Notes: generated by a model from the letters alone, not told the origin. A stretch of 64,000 bases of DNA from Parasitella parasitica NRRL 2501 (GCA_025201805.1 MU619251.1:248001-312000), one strand, 5' to 3'; shown: positions 44,343 to 51,177, numbered from the stretch's first letter. A program made the numbers and translations.

Positions 44343-45708
44343 ATGTCTAGCAAGGGATTGGAAAAGACTCTAAAAAAACTGAGAGATTCAGTGAATAATG
44401 GAAATTACTATGAGGCCCAGCAAATGTATCGAACTGTAGCTCGTAGGTATGTGTGTATTGCAATAAATACGTCGCGCGTTTTTTACGTTTACTGAAACCC
44501 CCTTTCCTTTGTAGATACAACAAGCAACAAAAGTATGCTGATACCATCCGTTTATTGCACGATGGTGTTATTTTACTGTTTGAGCACAAAAAATATGGTT
44601 CTGCGTCTGATTTAGCCAACTACATGCTCGAAACCTACAATTTGGCCCATTTACCGGTCAACGAGGAGTCATTAGGTAATGTACTTTCAAGAAATCCACA
44701 TGGCAGTAGCAGACGCTAATTAATTTATAGATCGAATTGTTGAAATTTTATCTCTATTTCCAACCACAGAAGTTGGTCGTAAGGCATTTATTAGCAGTGC
44801 GTTCAGGTAATTGATTGCAATCAATACCAACAACTATTTATTCAAACAAACTACAATTAGATGGACAAAGGCCGAGGGTGAGTATCCTGAAGGCGACCCT
44901 GAATTACACGATTTTGTCGGAACAATGTTTTATAACGGTAAGCGCGTAAAGATGATGTATAAAAATTACAAGACTAAGTGCAATCGCTGTGCGTAGAGAA
45001 AAAATACAGTTTGGCCGAGGACCACTTGCTCGTGGGTACAGACCACAGCGCTGAACTAATTGGCAAATTAGCTTATCATTGGGCCGCCGAAGAAAACGTT
45101 CAGTGGAAGGGCATCTATCTTGCTCGTATTTTACTCCAGTGAGCACAACTCTTTCTTTTATACACTGAGATACACTGCTCATATACTCAAAAATTAGGTT
45201 TTTGGCATCAAAGGATATTCATCATGCAACGCTGGCCTATAAAAACTTTATCAACGCCGGGCCTCAGCCTGTCGCAGCCGAATCCAAAGTTCGCCGTGCT
45301 CCTGCTGAAGAACCGATGCCCTTCCCCGTGTATGCAGATCCCTGGATGAATTTTACGCAAATGCTTTTGTTGACTGTACAAAGAGATGGGAAAGATTTGT
45401 TTATTGAACTGAAAACAAAATACGAAAGATTATATGGCAGCGAGGCAAATTTTGTAGAGGTAATTATACAAGTAGAAAAAGGGGAAAGGGGGGTTATATA
45501 GGCTTTTGGTTTAATCAAGAAAACTCGTAAATAGCTTGTAAATGAAATCGGTACTGTGTTCTTCGACATCCCAAAACCTAGAAAACAAGGTAATATGATG
45601 CAAGATTTAATGGCTAGTTTGTTTTCTGGAGGTGGAAGTGGAGGTGGCAACCCATTGCTTCAGTTGGGTGATGCAGCTTCAAAATCTTCTGGGGAGGATC
45701 TCGATTAG
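44343..45708 (+). CDS. GET4: Golgi to ER traffic protein 4 (GET pathway)
   Basis: NGNYYEAQQMYRTVARR|Y, GSASDLA, WT..GEYPEGDPELH, AEDHLLVGT, NFTQMLLLTVQR, IGTVFFDIP..GNMMQDLMASLFSG. Multi-exon. Confidence 0.93.
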
Positions 45709-46558
45709 TTTTAAAATTTGTATAGTAATAAATATTTGTGCGGTCGATTCCACCTGCGGAGCGACTGTAAAACCAGCAAAATGCTCGCTCTAATCCAGAT
45801 AAAGTGCACAACAGGGTTAGTATTAAGTGTCTCTAATGCAGTTTTGATTGCGCATCGACTGGCATAAGTTGCACACAGATAGCTAAATCGTACGATAAAA
45901 ATGGCCTTAGTTTCAAGTGTTCAAGAGGCCAACCCATTCAAATAATTTACAAAAACTAACAATGAAAATCACTCCGTATAATTAGATGTTATTCTATCTT
46001 CAAGTTACCTTTATGGAAGAAGCGAAAATGGAAAACAGACAAGGAAGTTTGATAAATTGCATTGAGACAAGAGTGAGGCTCAAAATTTATTTGTATATAA
46101 CTTTCACTTAGGTCGAAAGGCCTTTATTGTTTAATGATGAAAGCGGATCGAAACGAGCATGTATTATTAGACAATTGTAGGTATGTCAATGAGTCTTTTA
46201 ATTGTCTTTATTAAGAATTGAAGGACGAGCTTATCTACCAAAGCAAAGATTGATTATAATAGCTTGAACATATATGAGGCATGTTGACATGTATAGCTTG
46301 TATACATGCAACATAGCTATTGGTTCAATTAGTGTCTTTATACGAGAATCAAGTGCAATAATAAGAATATAAGGCAAAGTAGTGTGGATTAAAAACCCAT
46401 CATGGACAAAATCCTGGTTTTTAATTAGTTTATTTGTACCTTCTCAAAGCATTCAACAGTACATTTTCTAATCACCATTTGATAAAGACTATCTTGAACT
46501 CTCTTTTTTTTTTTTTAATTATTATTATTGTTCCTCTTTCGATATATTTAAATCAATA

Positions 46559-47737
46559 ACGCCTCATACACCTATTTATTCTGAAGTTCAGCAATTTTAT
46601 TATCCTCAAAAAACGGGCAAAATGGGAAAAAATTCTATCTGAAGGTAATAAGGAAATATCAAGTACTCAATATTCTAAGACGATAAGTAAAAAAATAATA
46701 ATAATAAAACAGAAGAAATACTTGATGTATTTGCAAGGTACTTACAAGCTGATTTACATAAAGCTACCGAGAAGGGAGTTAGCCCTACTATAAAAATTGC
46801 AAAATCAGATGCAGAGAAAAGACGTCAAGCTACTACTTCAACAGCGTCATCCTCTACAAGTACAATAATGTGAAGTTCTTGTCAAAAGGAGGGAAACAGT
46901 TGGGCAAGAAGTTGCAATTGCAAGAAATACAACCTAATACTAACAGAGCGTTTACAAGTTGGACTTGGACCAAATAATCGAAAATATTGTCTCTGTCACA
47001 TTTGCAACGTTCTGCAAGAATACTCCCCACAAAGCCGATTCTTTGGAAAAGGGCAAGGCGGTATCAAGCTTCAGCCGCGAAGTCATGGTAAAGACACAAC
47101 CATTTGTAAATTATTTCATTCTACAACACCCAGACAAGTTGTCAAATGGCTTTTCTGAACAAATTTTTGGTACACTATTTCAAAAACTGTTAGGAGTATT
47201 TCAGATAATATAGTGTTACTTCTCAAAAACTACAAGAGAAAGAATAATTTAGATGTGGATCAACTGGCAAACTCTTTTGCTAACATATCTGCAACTACAG
47301 GTAGTAGCTTGTTTGTTCACAGCAATGGGCTTACGAATTACGAACAACATCTCTCAACTGCATGACTGTCGCAACATCATACAATAACTACTATCTTGAG
47401 AATTTTGATAATTTTGTATAAAACCTCCAAGGTCAGTACAATAATTTCTATATCACATGCTCTAAAAAGCATTTTTATAAATCTGCAACTCTTGCTTGCA
47501 TCAAGACCTAAAACATCTGAAACGTGGCGAAGGTGAAAATGCCTAGCGAATCTACTTAGTATTGAAGTAGAATACTTGCAATATTTGGTGCAATCGTGAC
47601 ATGTTATGGCTGCCAGGAATATGTTTACCGTTGCCACTTCAATCTGGAGTGATAATAGCCGCCCCTATGTCTTTCAAAGACAACACGCCACCTCCAATGC
47701 GATTGCCTCGACTCACTTCGGTGAGTTGACGACTTGA
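46559..47737 (+). pseudogene. Decayed, internally deleted Fanzor (eukaryotic TnpB-like RNA-guided nuclease) gene
   Basis: Manual translation across stops and frameshifts. C-terminal part: YKTSK (47417-47431) | intron-like 47432-47480 | ICNSC..VLK*NTCNIWCNRD(+2 nt)VMAARNMFTVATSIWSDNSRPYVF..*. This is the TnpB/Fanzor YTS-CxxC..CxxC-(D/N)RDxxAAxN signature. N-terminal part has a degenerate zinc knuckle (*SSCQKEGNSWARSCNC) and helical segments. Confidence 0.75.
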
Positions 47738-47860
47738 AGGTTTTGCAGGTAAGAAATCTTTACAAGCTATAATTACGATTCGTCCAAAGAAACCGACATT
47801 CTGTCTTTGTCCTTTTTCGTATCTGCATACCTGAACCTATAACACAAGGTTTGATCGAGC
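47700..47860 (+). ncRNA. Candidate Fanzor omegaRNA scaffold (relic)
   Basis: Overlaps the ORF end. 9-bp stem with cUUCGg loop at 47708-47729, plus nested stems 47738-51/47828-38, 47774-78/47817-21 and 47785-98/47802-09. Confidence 0.5.
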
Positions 47861-49355
47861 TAATTTTTTTTTTCATGATTTATATGCATTTAGCCAAGAT
47901 ACTATATTCGCAAAATCCAAAATAAGGTCCAGATAAGAAAAGTGGAGAAAGATCGATCGAATGTATATATTTATATAAACCGTTCATGCCATGATAACAA
48001 CTTGCACCTGGATATTGCTCGTCTGTACATTCCCAGTGTGGTTTCAATCCTTTTAGGAATAAAATCGTACATTTGGTTGTTTTAGGCCAAAAAAATGTCC
48101 AGTTTTCCAAAAAAAGAATTACTCCTTTCAAAACAGAAGAAAATGGTTATATGATACGGGGTACACATAGCGCATCTTTAGCAAAAAAGAAACCATTCCG
48201 ACACCTTGTTTCAGGCAAGCCATGTTGCGGAATTAGCCTGTATTTCAAGGATATTTCAAGCCTTTATTCTCGCAAAGGGTTTATTAGATATTAATATAAT
48301 GATTATGAATGATTCCTTCCCCCCCCCCCCTCTCCTTCATTTACTAGTTCTCCTGTTCTAACAGCTCAGCAAATTATTTGTTTGTAAATTTTGCATCGGC
48401 AAAAAGTTGATTTTTCTTGAAATAGTAAAAATTGTTTTCGCTTACTGTGTTACATTACAATGTCAAGTTTAAAGTTTGATCGAGGTTTTTAAAGCATGTA
48501 CATGTAATGTATAGTGAACTCATTTCCTCACTGACCGACTCTGACGATGTCCTTATTTTGGGCTTCGCTAAAGGGGTATAAGCGATGAATCTTTCTTCCC
48601 TTCCCCCACTTGCACAATTTGTAATCAACGTTCTTGATCCAATGTAATGTAGATGTTTCGATTCACATCATGTTACGGGGAAGCTGGGTGTAAAGGAGAT
48701 CTTGTTTATCTTTGTTAAACTATCTCTCACATGCGATGCTAAATTACTGATGTTTCTCGCAACAATATAGATATAGTACAATGGATCGACCCCTAGGCTT
48801 TGCCTAGAGTACAATTGTTGGTTTTTTTTCTGGTGACAACAGGTTGCACTCAAGGTTCTACATCTATAATACAGATTCATATAAACAGCAAAGAAATTGT
48901 CAAAATACTTTACCATGTGAGCATTTTCGTTATATTAACTTGCCAACGTCATAGATGGTCGTTGTAATAATAACAACCCTAGTTTTGACGTCGACCAAGA
49001 TAGTGTTTTCAGGGATGATTCTATGGAAATTATATCTGTATGTGGAAAATGCTCCCTTCTGTATCCCCCTTACGTGTTATTGTAAATTATCTTTTCTCGT
49101 CTTTTGTAGCAGTAATTTTTCAGTAAGCAAGGTAGCATAAAGCTGCAGTTTTCGAGTATTCTTTGCAGTTTTGAGATTTCTCGCAGCAGTATGATTTGTC
49201 TATTGAATTTCCATAATGTGTTCAGGTCGGCCCCAAAAGGTAAATATAATTGATCTCTTTACTAAATGTTTATTAAATCATATATATTACATACAGAGAA
49301 CTAGGTGAGAAGATATACATAGATTGTACGAGCGTGTGGTTATAAAATCAAACCA

Positions 49356-49509: not shown

Positions 49510-51177
49510 TTATCGCAACTGCTGGTACTGGTGCTGCTGATGTTGTGCCCTGTCAAACCAATGATATACTGTCAGTAGCCTTTCTCGCAGTGTTGATATA
49601 CCAAGTAAGCAAATTTTTTCTTGCTGGTCTAAAGGCAATACGTTTGCAATCCACCACACAATTGTTTCTTGATCAGATTGCTGTAAATGCCAATCGTATT
49701 GCATGATCCAAGCATGGTTTGCTGTGCTGGATAGGTACTGTACAAGCCGTGGATGAATCTCCTGATTAAAGAAAAGATTGATATTGGGAGGAGTACACGA
49801 TGTTACTATGGGCGATTTCTTGGGCGGTTTAAAATAGTGGTGAGTAATGGTTGTGCCAAGTGATTGAGGTGGTGGAGAGGGTGGTTTTATTCCTCCAAAG
49901 TGCATTGTCGATGCCCATGTTTTCCTATTCATTAAGCCAGGTATGTTGTTAAACGAAGGAATATGGTTTGGCGCAGAACTCGACAACCGCATTGAACATG
50001 GTCTCGGTCTAGCCATCTGCTTGTTATTGTTCGCAGTGACTGAGCTGCTGCTAGTAGATATTGGTCGAGTCATTGCGGTAGATGCTGCTGTTGCGTTATT
50101 CAGAGTTGGCATAGTCCAGCGTTTTCTCTCCACTGGCAAACCAAAATCAAAATCATCACTGTGATTGATATCATCGAAGCGGGTTATATTGCCCACATAT
50201 AGTCCTTCTTGGTCAATGATCAAATTACTTATTTTCAGTCGAAATAGACCGAACGCTTGTACAACAGAATGTCGAATATCTGCCGAGTACTCAACATGGC
50301 TCACCTGCAGCATGATGCCGTAATCGTAAAAGTTGTTTGGGCTACTGTCTTTGGTGAAAACACATATAGCATAGTGTTTTTGGTGTGGTCTGGTAGTCAT
50401 TTCCTGGAGTAGCGAGCTTTTATCGTTTGTGACATTAATGTGAAATAGACAATACTGGTTAGGAAATGCAACAGCTGAAGACACTTGGATTAGCGGTGTG
50501 TGCTGCTGTAAATTCATCGTTGACACTGTAAAATCATTGCTATCAACATTATTATAGATATAGTCGATCCAGCCAGAGACAATTTGGTTTACTTTTCCAA
50601 TTCGGATCAGCTCATGTCTGCAAAATGGACATGATCTAGTCTTCATATCGGTCATAGTGCGAAGCAAGCATTCTTTGCAAAATGTATGTCCACACTGTGT
50701 TGTGATTGGATTCGATAATGGCAAAAAACAAATAGAGCAATCCAACGATTGCTTGATGTAATCGATATCTTGTAGATTGTTCATGATATTTTCGAGAAGG
50801 ATGTTGGGTCTATAATCGTTGTTATGCTCGCGGAGACATGAAAATGAAATGCATTGGTAAGGTTCGTTTGACGGTAGACAGTCGTAGCAGGATGTAAATC
50901 CGCATGAAAGTGTTGTTGGTTGCTTGAATGGCTGCAAACATCTCTGGCAATGAGTCAGGGCATTTAGTTGATTTGGTTGCTCTTTTGATGAATATGGAGT
51001 CAAGACATGAGATGATTTGTACTCTTTAATCACCGCTTTACCGACATTTAGGTTGTTCCCATGGTTATTATTGTTGCCAACTAAAAAAAAAAATTAATTG
51101 AATATTTTCCAGAAACAGTAAATATTTTGTCTACCAGTAAAAGCACTGTGAAAGGAATTCTCCCAATCAATTTGCAT
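49510..51177 (-). CDS. LON peptidase N-terminal domain and RING finger protein (LONRF-like E3 ligase)
   Basis: Exon 1 MQIDWENSFHSAFT (51177-51135), then exon 2 from 51080. Degenerate RING CQRC..CGFTSCYDC, C3HC4 RING CSIC..CGHTFCKEC..CPFCR, and LON substrate-binding domain (AFPNQ..DYGIML..GLFRLKI; WWIANVLPL..LRERL). Confidence 0.88.

Follow-up and report, generated by a model that had tools for sequence, protein, structure and literature searches.

Fanzor1 elements were described in 2013 from Mucor circinelloides (10 families), Rhizopus and Phycomyces, where they are carried by Mariner, MuDr and other transposons, and their protein follows the motif D-x(125,275)-[TS][TS]-x-x-C4-x(5,50)-RD (PMC3627910). 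In Fanzor proteins a Glu precedes the zinc finger by six residues, and guide function falls to the 3' transcript (2026 review, PMC13565253). RNA-guided DNA cleavage is known from the literature for SpuFz1 and others (PMC13565253, PMC11423790), and the RNA-guided nuclease activity and structures of Fanzor were published in 2023-2024 (PMC11423790; 10.1101/2023.06.13.544871). In the IStrons, which combine a group I intron with TnpB, splicing and guide-RNA formation occur at the same transposon end (10.1101/2023.11.20.567912).

The window analyzed here is a stretch of 64,000 nucleotides of the Parasitella parasitica NRRL 2501 genome (contig 15, 248001-312000; 32.8 Mb in 450 contigs), and window positions are counted from its first letter. 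A sequence-only reading had proposed that positions 46559-47737 (plus strand) hide the relic of a Fanzor gene. We consider the window from about 46080 to 47900 (plus strand) to be, with a probability of roughly 0.93, an old dead copy of a non-autonomous transposon with terminal inverted repeats (TIRs) that carried a Fanzor1 gene; judged from its homology, 46559-47737 is the Fanzor1 pseudogene within a relic of at least 46080-47830.

The family to which this copy belongs resembles the Mucorales Fanzor1 elements of Bao and Jurka 2013 (MCi, ROr and PBl families; PMC3627910) in having a TnpB-like gene with D...[TS][TS]-x-x-C4...RD and a variable N-terminus, in being a passenger of a TIR DNA transposon without a transposase of its own, in showing TA duplications like the Mariner-borne examples of that study (PMC3627910), and in having a host of the same fungal order, with a related copy in Mucor flavus KT1a. 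[quoted passage not shown] Four short peptide motifs were absent from the supplementary files of PMC3627910, and no named Repbase family was matched.

Comparison with SpuFz1 of Spizellomyces punctatus (PDB 8GKH, 9CEU-9CEZ) shows that the last exon of the family aligns with the RuvC-III region and tail at the C-terminus of this protein (8GKH, E 1.2e-4; YWNRDAMASKNML...GRPQVF with YWNRDMLSTCNML...GRPEVF), and both have a collinear RuvC-I DPxxRD stretch and a Glu adjoining the zinc finger. The RuvC-I match, TVDPGRRD with VIDPNKRD of 8GKH, is collinear and weak (E 0.96); overall similarity is low, and the N-terminal and middle regions could not be aligned by sequence alone. The family differs from SpuFz1 by a CCHC knuckle near the N-terminus and by spliceosomal introns, one of them between KTSK and the zinc finger. 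It may also be likened to the bacterial TnpB elements of IS200/IS605 and IS607 with their omega RNA, whose scaffold overlaps the nuclease gene at its 3' end and whose guide is supplied by flanking sequence, an arrangement that the family would share. In contrast to bacterial TnpB elements, neither TnpA nor a serine recombinase is present here and the window copy is dead; in contrast to IStrons and TnpB, a DDE-type TIR is removed here, by spliceosomal splicing (GT..AG, ACTAAC branch box).

Results

The relic and its relatives in the genome

A DNA search of the same genome with 46400-47900 matched 27 other places, and the window matched this multi-copy family with blastn E values of 1e-30 to 1e-122, which by sequence is far more than chance would give. 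The homology is directly visible as two collinear blocks in sensitive blastn, 46534-47411 and 47419/47441-47823 (47872 for one copy), both matching the same elements at 67-79% DNA identity (72-73% in the N-terminal and 68-71% in the C-terminal part), which lie about 1.6 kb apart in the elements versus about 10-30 bp in the window. At the protein level, window pieces matched P0001, the family member of Mucor flavus, with E values of 9e-26, 4e-17 and 3e-5, the first two from the N-terminal remnant, and the C-terminal tail matched the C-terminus of P0076 (NMMTISKAVWSGQGRPQVF; E 5e-4 in a three-sequence search). Upstream of the coding remnant, just two patches still match the 5' part of the element, and the first of these corresponds to a place about 320 bp inside the left end of the parent. 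The features of the relic, all on the plus strand, are as follows.

46080..46126, 5' non-coding homology patch, 79-81% identical to L041 2766-2812, L043 and L044
46481-46521, second upstream patch homologous to the 5' non-coding part of the family element
46559..46561, lost start codon, ACG for the family ATG (window T-PHTPIYSEVQQF)
46559..47416, N-terminal coding remnant spread over three frames, 72-73% DNA identity to the family
46871..46921, CCHC zinc-knuckle remnant, by comparison with CSSCQEEGHSSARSSQC of the family and CSKCKRRGHRSARSPLC of P0076
47088..47300, cryptic alternative GT..AG intron of 213 nt, joint in RNA contig 4
47411..47419, internal-deletion junction, the two halves about 1.6 kb apart in L041, L042, L043 and L049
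47420..47431, KTSK, remains of RuvC-II and the pre-zinc-finger region (family INEFKTSK)
47432..47480, relic of the ORF intron with GT donor kept and acceptor AG changed to AA, by alignment to L043 and L044
47481..47600, remnant of the zinc-finger and RuvC-III exon, ICNSC and NRD kept, two TAG stops
47597..47600, 2-nt insertion directly after NRD with frameshift, by family alignment
47603..47737, C-terminal tail VMAARNMFTVATSIWSDNSRPYVF..., stop codon at the stop position of the family
47708..47729, 9-bp hairpin with UUCG loop at the ORF end, fold kept in five copies
47749..47893, spliceosomal intron of 145 nt (GTAAGA...TTTAG), joint in a mismatch-free RNA contig of 742 nt
47830..47903, strongly decayed right TIR by weak alignment to the TIRs of L047, L048 and L041, inferred end near 47902 followed by TA

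The nearest relatives are the short relics L047 (contig 88) and L048 (contig 10), which are 76-77% identical to the window by sensitive blastn in the 3' part only and 79-84% identical over shorter stretches in the first DNA search. L047 (3518-3934, minus strand) is a 3'-terminal fragment of the relic's own subfamily, keeping the zinc-finger exon, the hairpin and the right TIR; the stretch from donor to TIR is lost, its donor reads ACGAG/GTAAGAA and it has no ACTAAC box.

Searches with the window itself were blank: contig 15 gave no PF07282 match in a profile scan of the whole genome, four window pieces gave no TnpB-related match in Pfam, and the C-terminal piece found nothing among PDB sequences at E up to 10. 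Since these pieces are too short and decayed, the Pfam and PDB blanks are not evidence against homology. The assignment to Fanzor depends on homology to the relatives.

Fanzor1 hallmarks of the parent family

Read exon by exon, family copies start with MPRIPIYPEV..., followed by the CCHC knuckle, and continue with ...AQLFVNHFILQHP...QNFWYTIS...LSTACETVATAYNNYYIENFE... in the N-terminal part, ...FRPCTVDPGRRD... with the RuvC-I Asp (...TVDPGRRD...) in the middle, and ...LLLVDINEFKTSK, a 65-nt intron and ICNNCL...CKSCNIYWNRDAMASKNML...GRPQVFKR... at the end. A Glu lies six residues ahead of the first Cys of the CxxC...CxxC zinc finger, and NRDxxAxxN is present. The exons were searched singly rather than as a joined spliced protein. 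Against PF07282 (Cas12f1-like TNB) the last exon reached E 0.0017, a score that stays below the cut-off because the domain is interrupted by the intron, and against the mimivirus TnpB-like protein L79 it reached E 0.1; in tblastn both exons matched paralogues of the same genome that are PF07282-positive (E 1e-13 to 1e-17).

When the N-terminal 162 aa of the family were searched with HMMER against 1.84 billion representative proteins, 106 matches, mostly fragments, were obtained. One of them, P0076, is an uninterrupted protein of 690 aa with a CCHC knuckle, LFVNYY / QNFWY / ATSYTNNIVENFEN, LDPGR and EFKTSKTCNLC...CCHHC...QRD, matching PF07282 over the cut-off (E 2e-7). Its LDPGR stands about 185 residues before FKTSK, and the protein conforms to the Bao-Jurka motif D-x(125,275)-[TS][TS]-x-x-C4-x(5,50)-RD. 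Homologues of the N-terminal part thus carry a C-terminal RuvC domain, both as collinear genomic copies and in P0076, a point on which the sequence-only reading had staked its case; being homologous end to end with elements that bear Fanzor1 hallmarks and match PF07282 and 8GKH, the relic keeps the Fanzor identity that had been proposed for it.

The supposition that the genome has or had a family of such elements was also borne out, as the profile scan gave 79 PF07282 matches, 36 of them over the cut-off. As to intact copies with the D-E-D triad, the search for which had been suggested as a check, related copies with the Asp, the Glu and NRD were found; many stretches of the other copies read N, and the visible copies L041, L042 and L049 each carry stops or frameshifts. 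Frames of 554-1124 aa beside PF07282 matches were considered as intact genes and rejected, being runs of N at L045 and L046.

Two side observations concern the N-terminal region. An in-frame TAA within a GTAAGT-like string just after codon 44 is common to the family copies (L041 3446-3452; L049 5133-5140) and could be either a shared nonsense mutation or a small intron. The gene model of P0001 skips the whole CCHC-knuckle region as an intron.

By analogy with published Fanzor1 work, the parent would have had nuclease and guide-RNA function. Intact relatives would encode a TnpB-like RNA-guided endonuclease with a split RuvC, made up of the Asp of VDPGRRD, the Glu before the zinc finger and the Asp of NRD, and the 3' end of the gene together with the sequence after it would encode the scaffold of the guide (omega) RNA.

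Lesions of the window copy

Direct reading of the plus strand over 46559-47737 recovered all the motifs that had been quoted from it, as well as the stops, the 2-nt slip and the ACG. ACG-PHTPIYSEVQQF begins at 46559; the N-terminal strings SSFSREVMVKTQPFVNYFILQH, FWYTI, HLSTA and TVATSYNNYYLENFDNF are spread across three frames; TAT AAA ACC TCC AAG (YKTSK) occupies 47417-47431; ICNSC begins at 47481 and is followed by TAG stops (47544-46, 47568-70); the codons of CNRD end at 47600, before the 2-nt insertion; and VMAARNMF... (VMAARNMFTVATSIWSDNSRPYVF...) begins at 47603 and is closed by the TGA of 47735-37. Of the open pieces the longest has 84 aa, and no ORF above 86 aa is present on either strand in the relic region.

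The largest lesion is an internal deletion of about 1.45 kb (about 1.43-1.53 kb; junction 47411-47419), which removed the middle of the gene and which the earlier reading did not mention. It lies between two short similar parental sequences (AACTAYTA.CTTG.AGA.TTT) and took with it the RuvC-I Asp segment TVDPGRRD (L041:4322-5254; L049 6502-6789) and the RuvC-II Glu codon of INEFKTSK, so that the window reads ...ILYKTSK and the RuvC-II motif is left half present. The YKTSK that had been read as RuvC-II is therefore correct in its KTSK; its Tyr lies on the deletion junction and the catalytic Glu before FKTSK is absent.

Smaller lesions extend along the whole remnant, which has at least five frame-breaking indels and three in-frame stops. 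The start codon is changed from ATG to ACG at 46559 (compare MPRIPIYPEVEKF of L041 and MPRTPIYPEVENF of P0001), and the family ATG (MPRIPIYPEV / MPRTPIYPEV) falls exactly on this ACG, in agreement with the mutated start noted before. Frame-breaking indels are found near 46592 (+1), 46690-46742, 46981 (+1), 47161 (-1), 47364 (-4) and 47597-47600. The zinc-knuckle remnant that had been recognized from the sequence corresponds to C-x2-C-x4-H-x7-C of the family, with a stop (TGA, 46871-73) for the first Cys and Asn (46895-97) for the His. In the zinc finger the first CxxC (ICNSC) is intact and the third Cys is changed to TAG (47568-70); the zinc-ligand losses of the window copy include two residues. 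The (N)RD motif is kept and is severed from the downstream part by the 2-nt insertion, and the acceptor of the ORF intron is changed from AG to AA (family acceptor ...CATAG/ATCTGC in L043 and L044).

KTSK, the first CxxC and NRD are the only catalytic motifs that survive. Since three of the four (RuvC-I Asp, RuvC-II Glu and the C4 zinc finger) are lost and RuvC-III alone is retained, the copy is a pseudogene and not a functional member of Fanzor1. According to the proposed course of decay, the central 1.45 kb would have been lost by deletion between the short similar sequences, and point decay would have come next, with loss of the start, stops, frameshifts and a dead intron acceptor. With two of the three catalytic residues deleted and these later lesions added, no nuclease could be made, so that the window copy, as read, is dead.

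Carrier transposon and element ends

The best-preserved copy, L041 (contig 99), is an element of about 3.7 kb with TIRs of 133 nt (88% complementarity), bounded as TA/CAGTTGACG...CGTCAACTG/TA. TA is found on both sides at L041 and L042 and directly after the right end in 11 copies, in which the third base is variable; this indicates that the duplication is TA, as in Tc1/mariner. The family has both the TA duplication and the TIRs of the Tc1/mariner type, and the carrier would thus appear to be Tc1/mariner-like, with ends that begin with CAGT. In the TIRs of L041 (2445-2600 and 5997-6143) a GTCCCATTTTCGTA-like unit recurs several times as a subterminal direct repeat; the units are probably bound by the transposase, and their number varies between copies, with one extra in L014 and some lost in L016. 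A further copy, 81% identical to L041, was found in GCA_040367835.1 (BAABUK010000002.1), accessions assigned to Mucor flavus KT1a (PMC11385716), in keeping with the Mucorales setting from which the sequence-only reading had argued.

At the window copy no left TIR could be recognized upstream of the relic, probes made from the family TIRs matched nothing in the window with up to 3 mismatches, and the inverted repeats found in a search around the relic were all A/T-rich or at chance level. A right TIR aligns weakly to those of L047, L048 and L041, to about 47903. With no left TIR and a doubtful right one, the element ends given for the window are putative, as is the arrival of the relic by transposition.

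Transcription and splicing of the relic

The relic sits between the 3' ends of two convergent genes.

44343 to about 45708, plus strand, GET4 gene, neighbor of the relic
ORF 49510-51033, minus strand, gene with RING and LON-substrate-binding domains, neighbor of the relic

RNA information came from one small public run, X1, as assembled contigs that do not give strand and abundance directly. The contigs remove all five GET4 introns (GT..AG), which indicates that X1 is RNA. Across 44672-45533 they confirm these five as short introns of 54-75 nt, where the ORF list shows fragments. The relic is covered over about 46471-48307 at a contig depth of 4-9, versus 118-224 for GET4, and is thus transcribed weakly, at about 3-5% of the GET4 contig depth. 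On the other side, an RNA contig of 2538 nt and depth 567 covers the ORF-poor stretch 48609-49239 and leaves it at 49239; the contig probably represents a long 3' UTR, with introns, that belongs to the RING/LON gene on the minus strand.

Two GT..AG joints were observed on the plus strand, 47088-47300 (213 nt) and 47749-47893 (145 nt). The former is alternative, as contig 4 is spliced and contigs 2 and 3 run unspliced through the same stretch; it has a CTAAC box 16 nt before the AG, and the gene model of P0001 reads through the corresponding stretch. The ORF intron at 47432-47480 is retained because its acceptor is mutated, contig 4 being continuous over 47300-47746. The 47749-47893 joint is contained in a 742-nt contig that has no mismatches and runs on to 48160, so that the spliced RNA extends 270 nt into the flank.

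A second RNA contig is 90-95% like window 47662-47748, and its loose ends match L048 on contig 10. It is spliced from the same donor to ...CATTAG/CTCAAC..., 22 nt before the end of L048 (about 3936-4115 of contig 10, minus strand). In these two decayed copies the acceptor is located about 9-22 nt before the right end, and the right TIR is removed.

The hairpin and the splice at the right end

The stretch common to most copies corresponds to window 47559-47755 and ends in the hairpin at the stop codon. Among five copies from three sub-lineages the sequence of the lower stem differs and its pairing is kept, with compensatory pairs at alignment columns 150/176 and 151/175, and the z-scores of the hairpin range from -1.8 (window, L047) to -4.6 (L049). 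From this conservation of fold, the hairpin at 47708-47729 is probably the putative scaffold stem of a guide RNA (omega RNA).

About 20 nt past the hairpin follow the donor CAG/GTAAGAA, which is conserved in all family copies and in Mucor flavus, and an ACTAAC box. GGTGAGT near the stop had been considered as a splice donor and was rejected, as it is the 3' arm of the hairpin and the RNA uses the GTAAGA donor 20 nt on. Among main-family copies with a full end, 10 have their first AG after ACTAAC exactly 12 nt from the transposon end, and in L018 the distance is 16 nt. The right TIR is free of AG for 131 nt, and 226 of 20,000 mononucleotide shuffles were as good. The donor, the ACTAAC box, the AG-free TIR and the position of the AG fit selection for a splice of the right TIR, and this splice is kept by the dead window relic and by the truncated copy on contig 10. 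The transcript of the dead copy still uses the 3' donor of the family, splicing out its decayed right TIR.

We raise the tentative possibility, to which we give less than even odds, that the spliceosome removes almost the whole right TIR, which sets the scaffold hairpin 12-22 nt from the host flank, and in this way builds the guide RNA independently of the TIR of the carrier. The splice may instead be an ordinary 3'-UTR intron. No description of a splicing-based guide-RNA mechanism at the right end of Fanzor was found in the Fanzor literature searched.

These observations bear on the best-surviving alternative to our reading, namely that the relic is dead as a gene and works as an RNA: its spliced transcript, in which the scaffold hairpin is joined to host flank, could serve an intact Fanzor1 paralogue as a guide in trans. 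In favor of this, the window copy still has the UUCG-looped hairpin, splicing takes place at the conserved donor in a transcript that reaches the flank, and the genome has many PF07282 loci without internal stops; however, the ACTAAC branch-point box of the window is mutated, the scaffold region is 24-30% diverged with the 2-nt insertion upstream of it, RNA depth is very low, and the nearest paralogues are only 70-80% identical, so cognate recognition is doubtful. We therefore regard a guide function in trans as improbable.

Discussion

A protein function, with the locus being a domesticated or truncated zinc-finger gene rather than the remnant of a nuclease, seems hardly credible. Transcription, splicing and an open piece of 84 aa are what such a gene might leave to be seen, but the start codon is lost, the frame is broken by the indels and stops described above, ligand residues are gone from both zinc modules, the mutated acceptor leaves the conserved intron in the RNA, and divergence is even along the remnant with no protected frame apparent. 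Likeness to TnpB/Fanzor through chance short motifs in AT-rich intergenic DNA, or through an unrelated zinc-finger transposon gene, would agree with the lack of Pfam and PDB matches to the window pieces themselves, but is already refuted by about 1.2 kb of collinear homology to elements whose C-terminal exon matches PF07282 and 8GKH, by protein E values down to 9e-26 against P0001, and by the N-terminal homologue P0076 with its PF07282 match over the cut-off.

Read as a dead Fanzor1-carrying transposon, the relic is ordinary, being one more dead copy in an order in which such elements have been catalogued since 2013. It documents a path of decay, in which an internal deletion between short similar sequences is followed by point decay. 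A useful by-product is the RNA evidence at two loci, the window and contig 10, for a splice of the right TIR beside the presumed scaffold; nothing but this retained 3' splice merits following up, for which full-length copies are better suited. Should the splice belong to guide-RNA biogenesis, this would account for the ability of Fanzor1 genes to switch between unrelated transposon ends, and would matter for the design of Fanzor guide RNAs.
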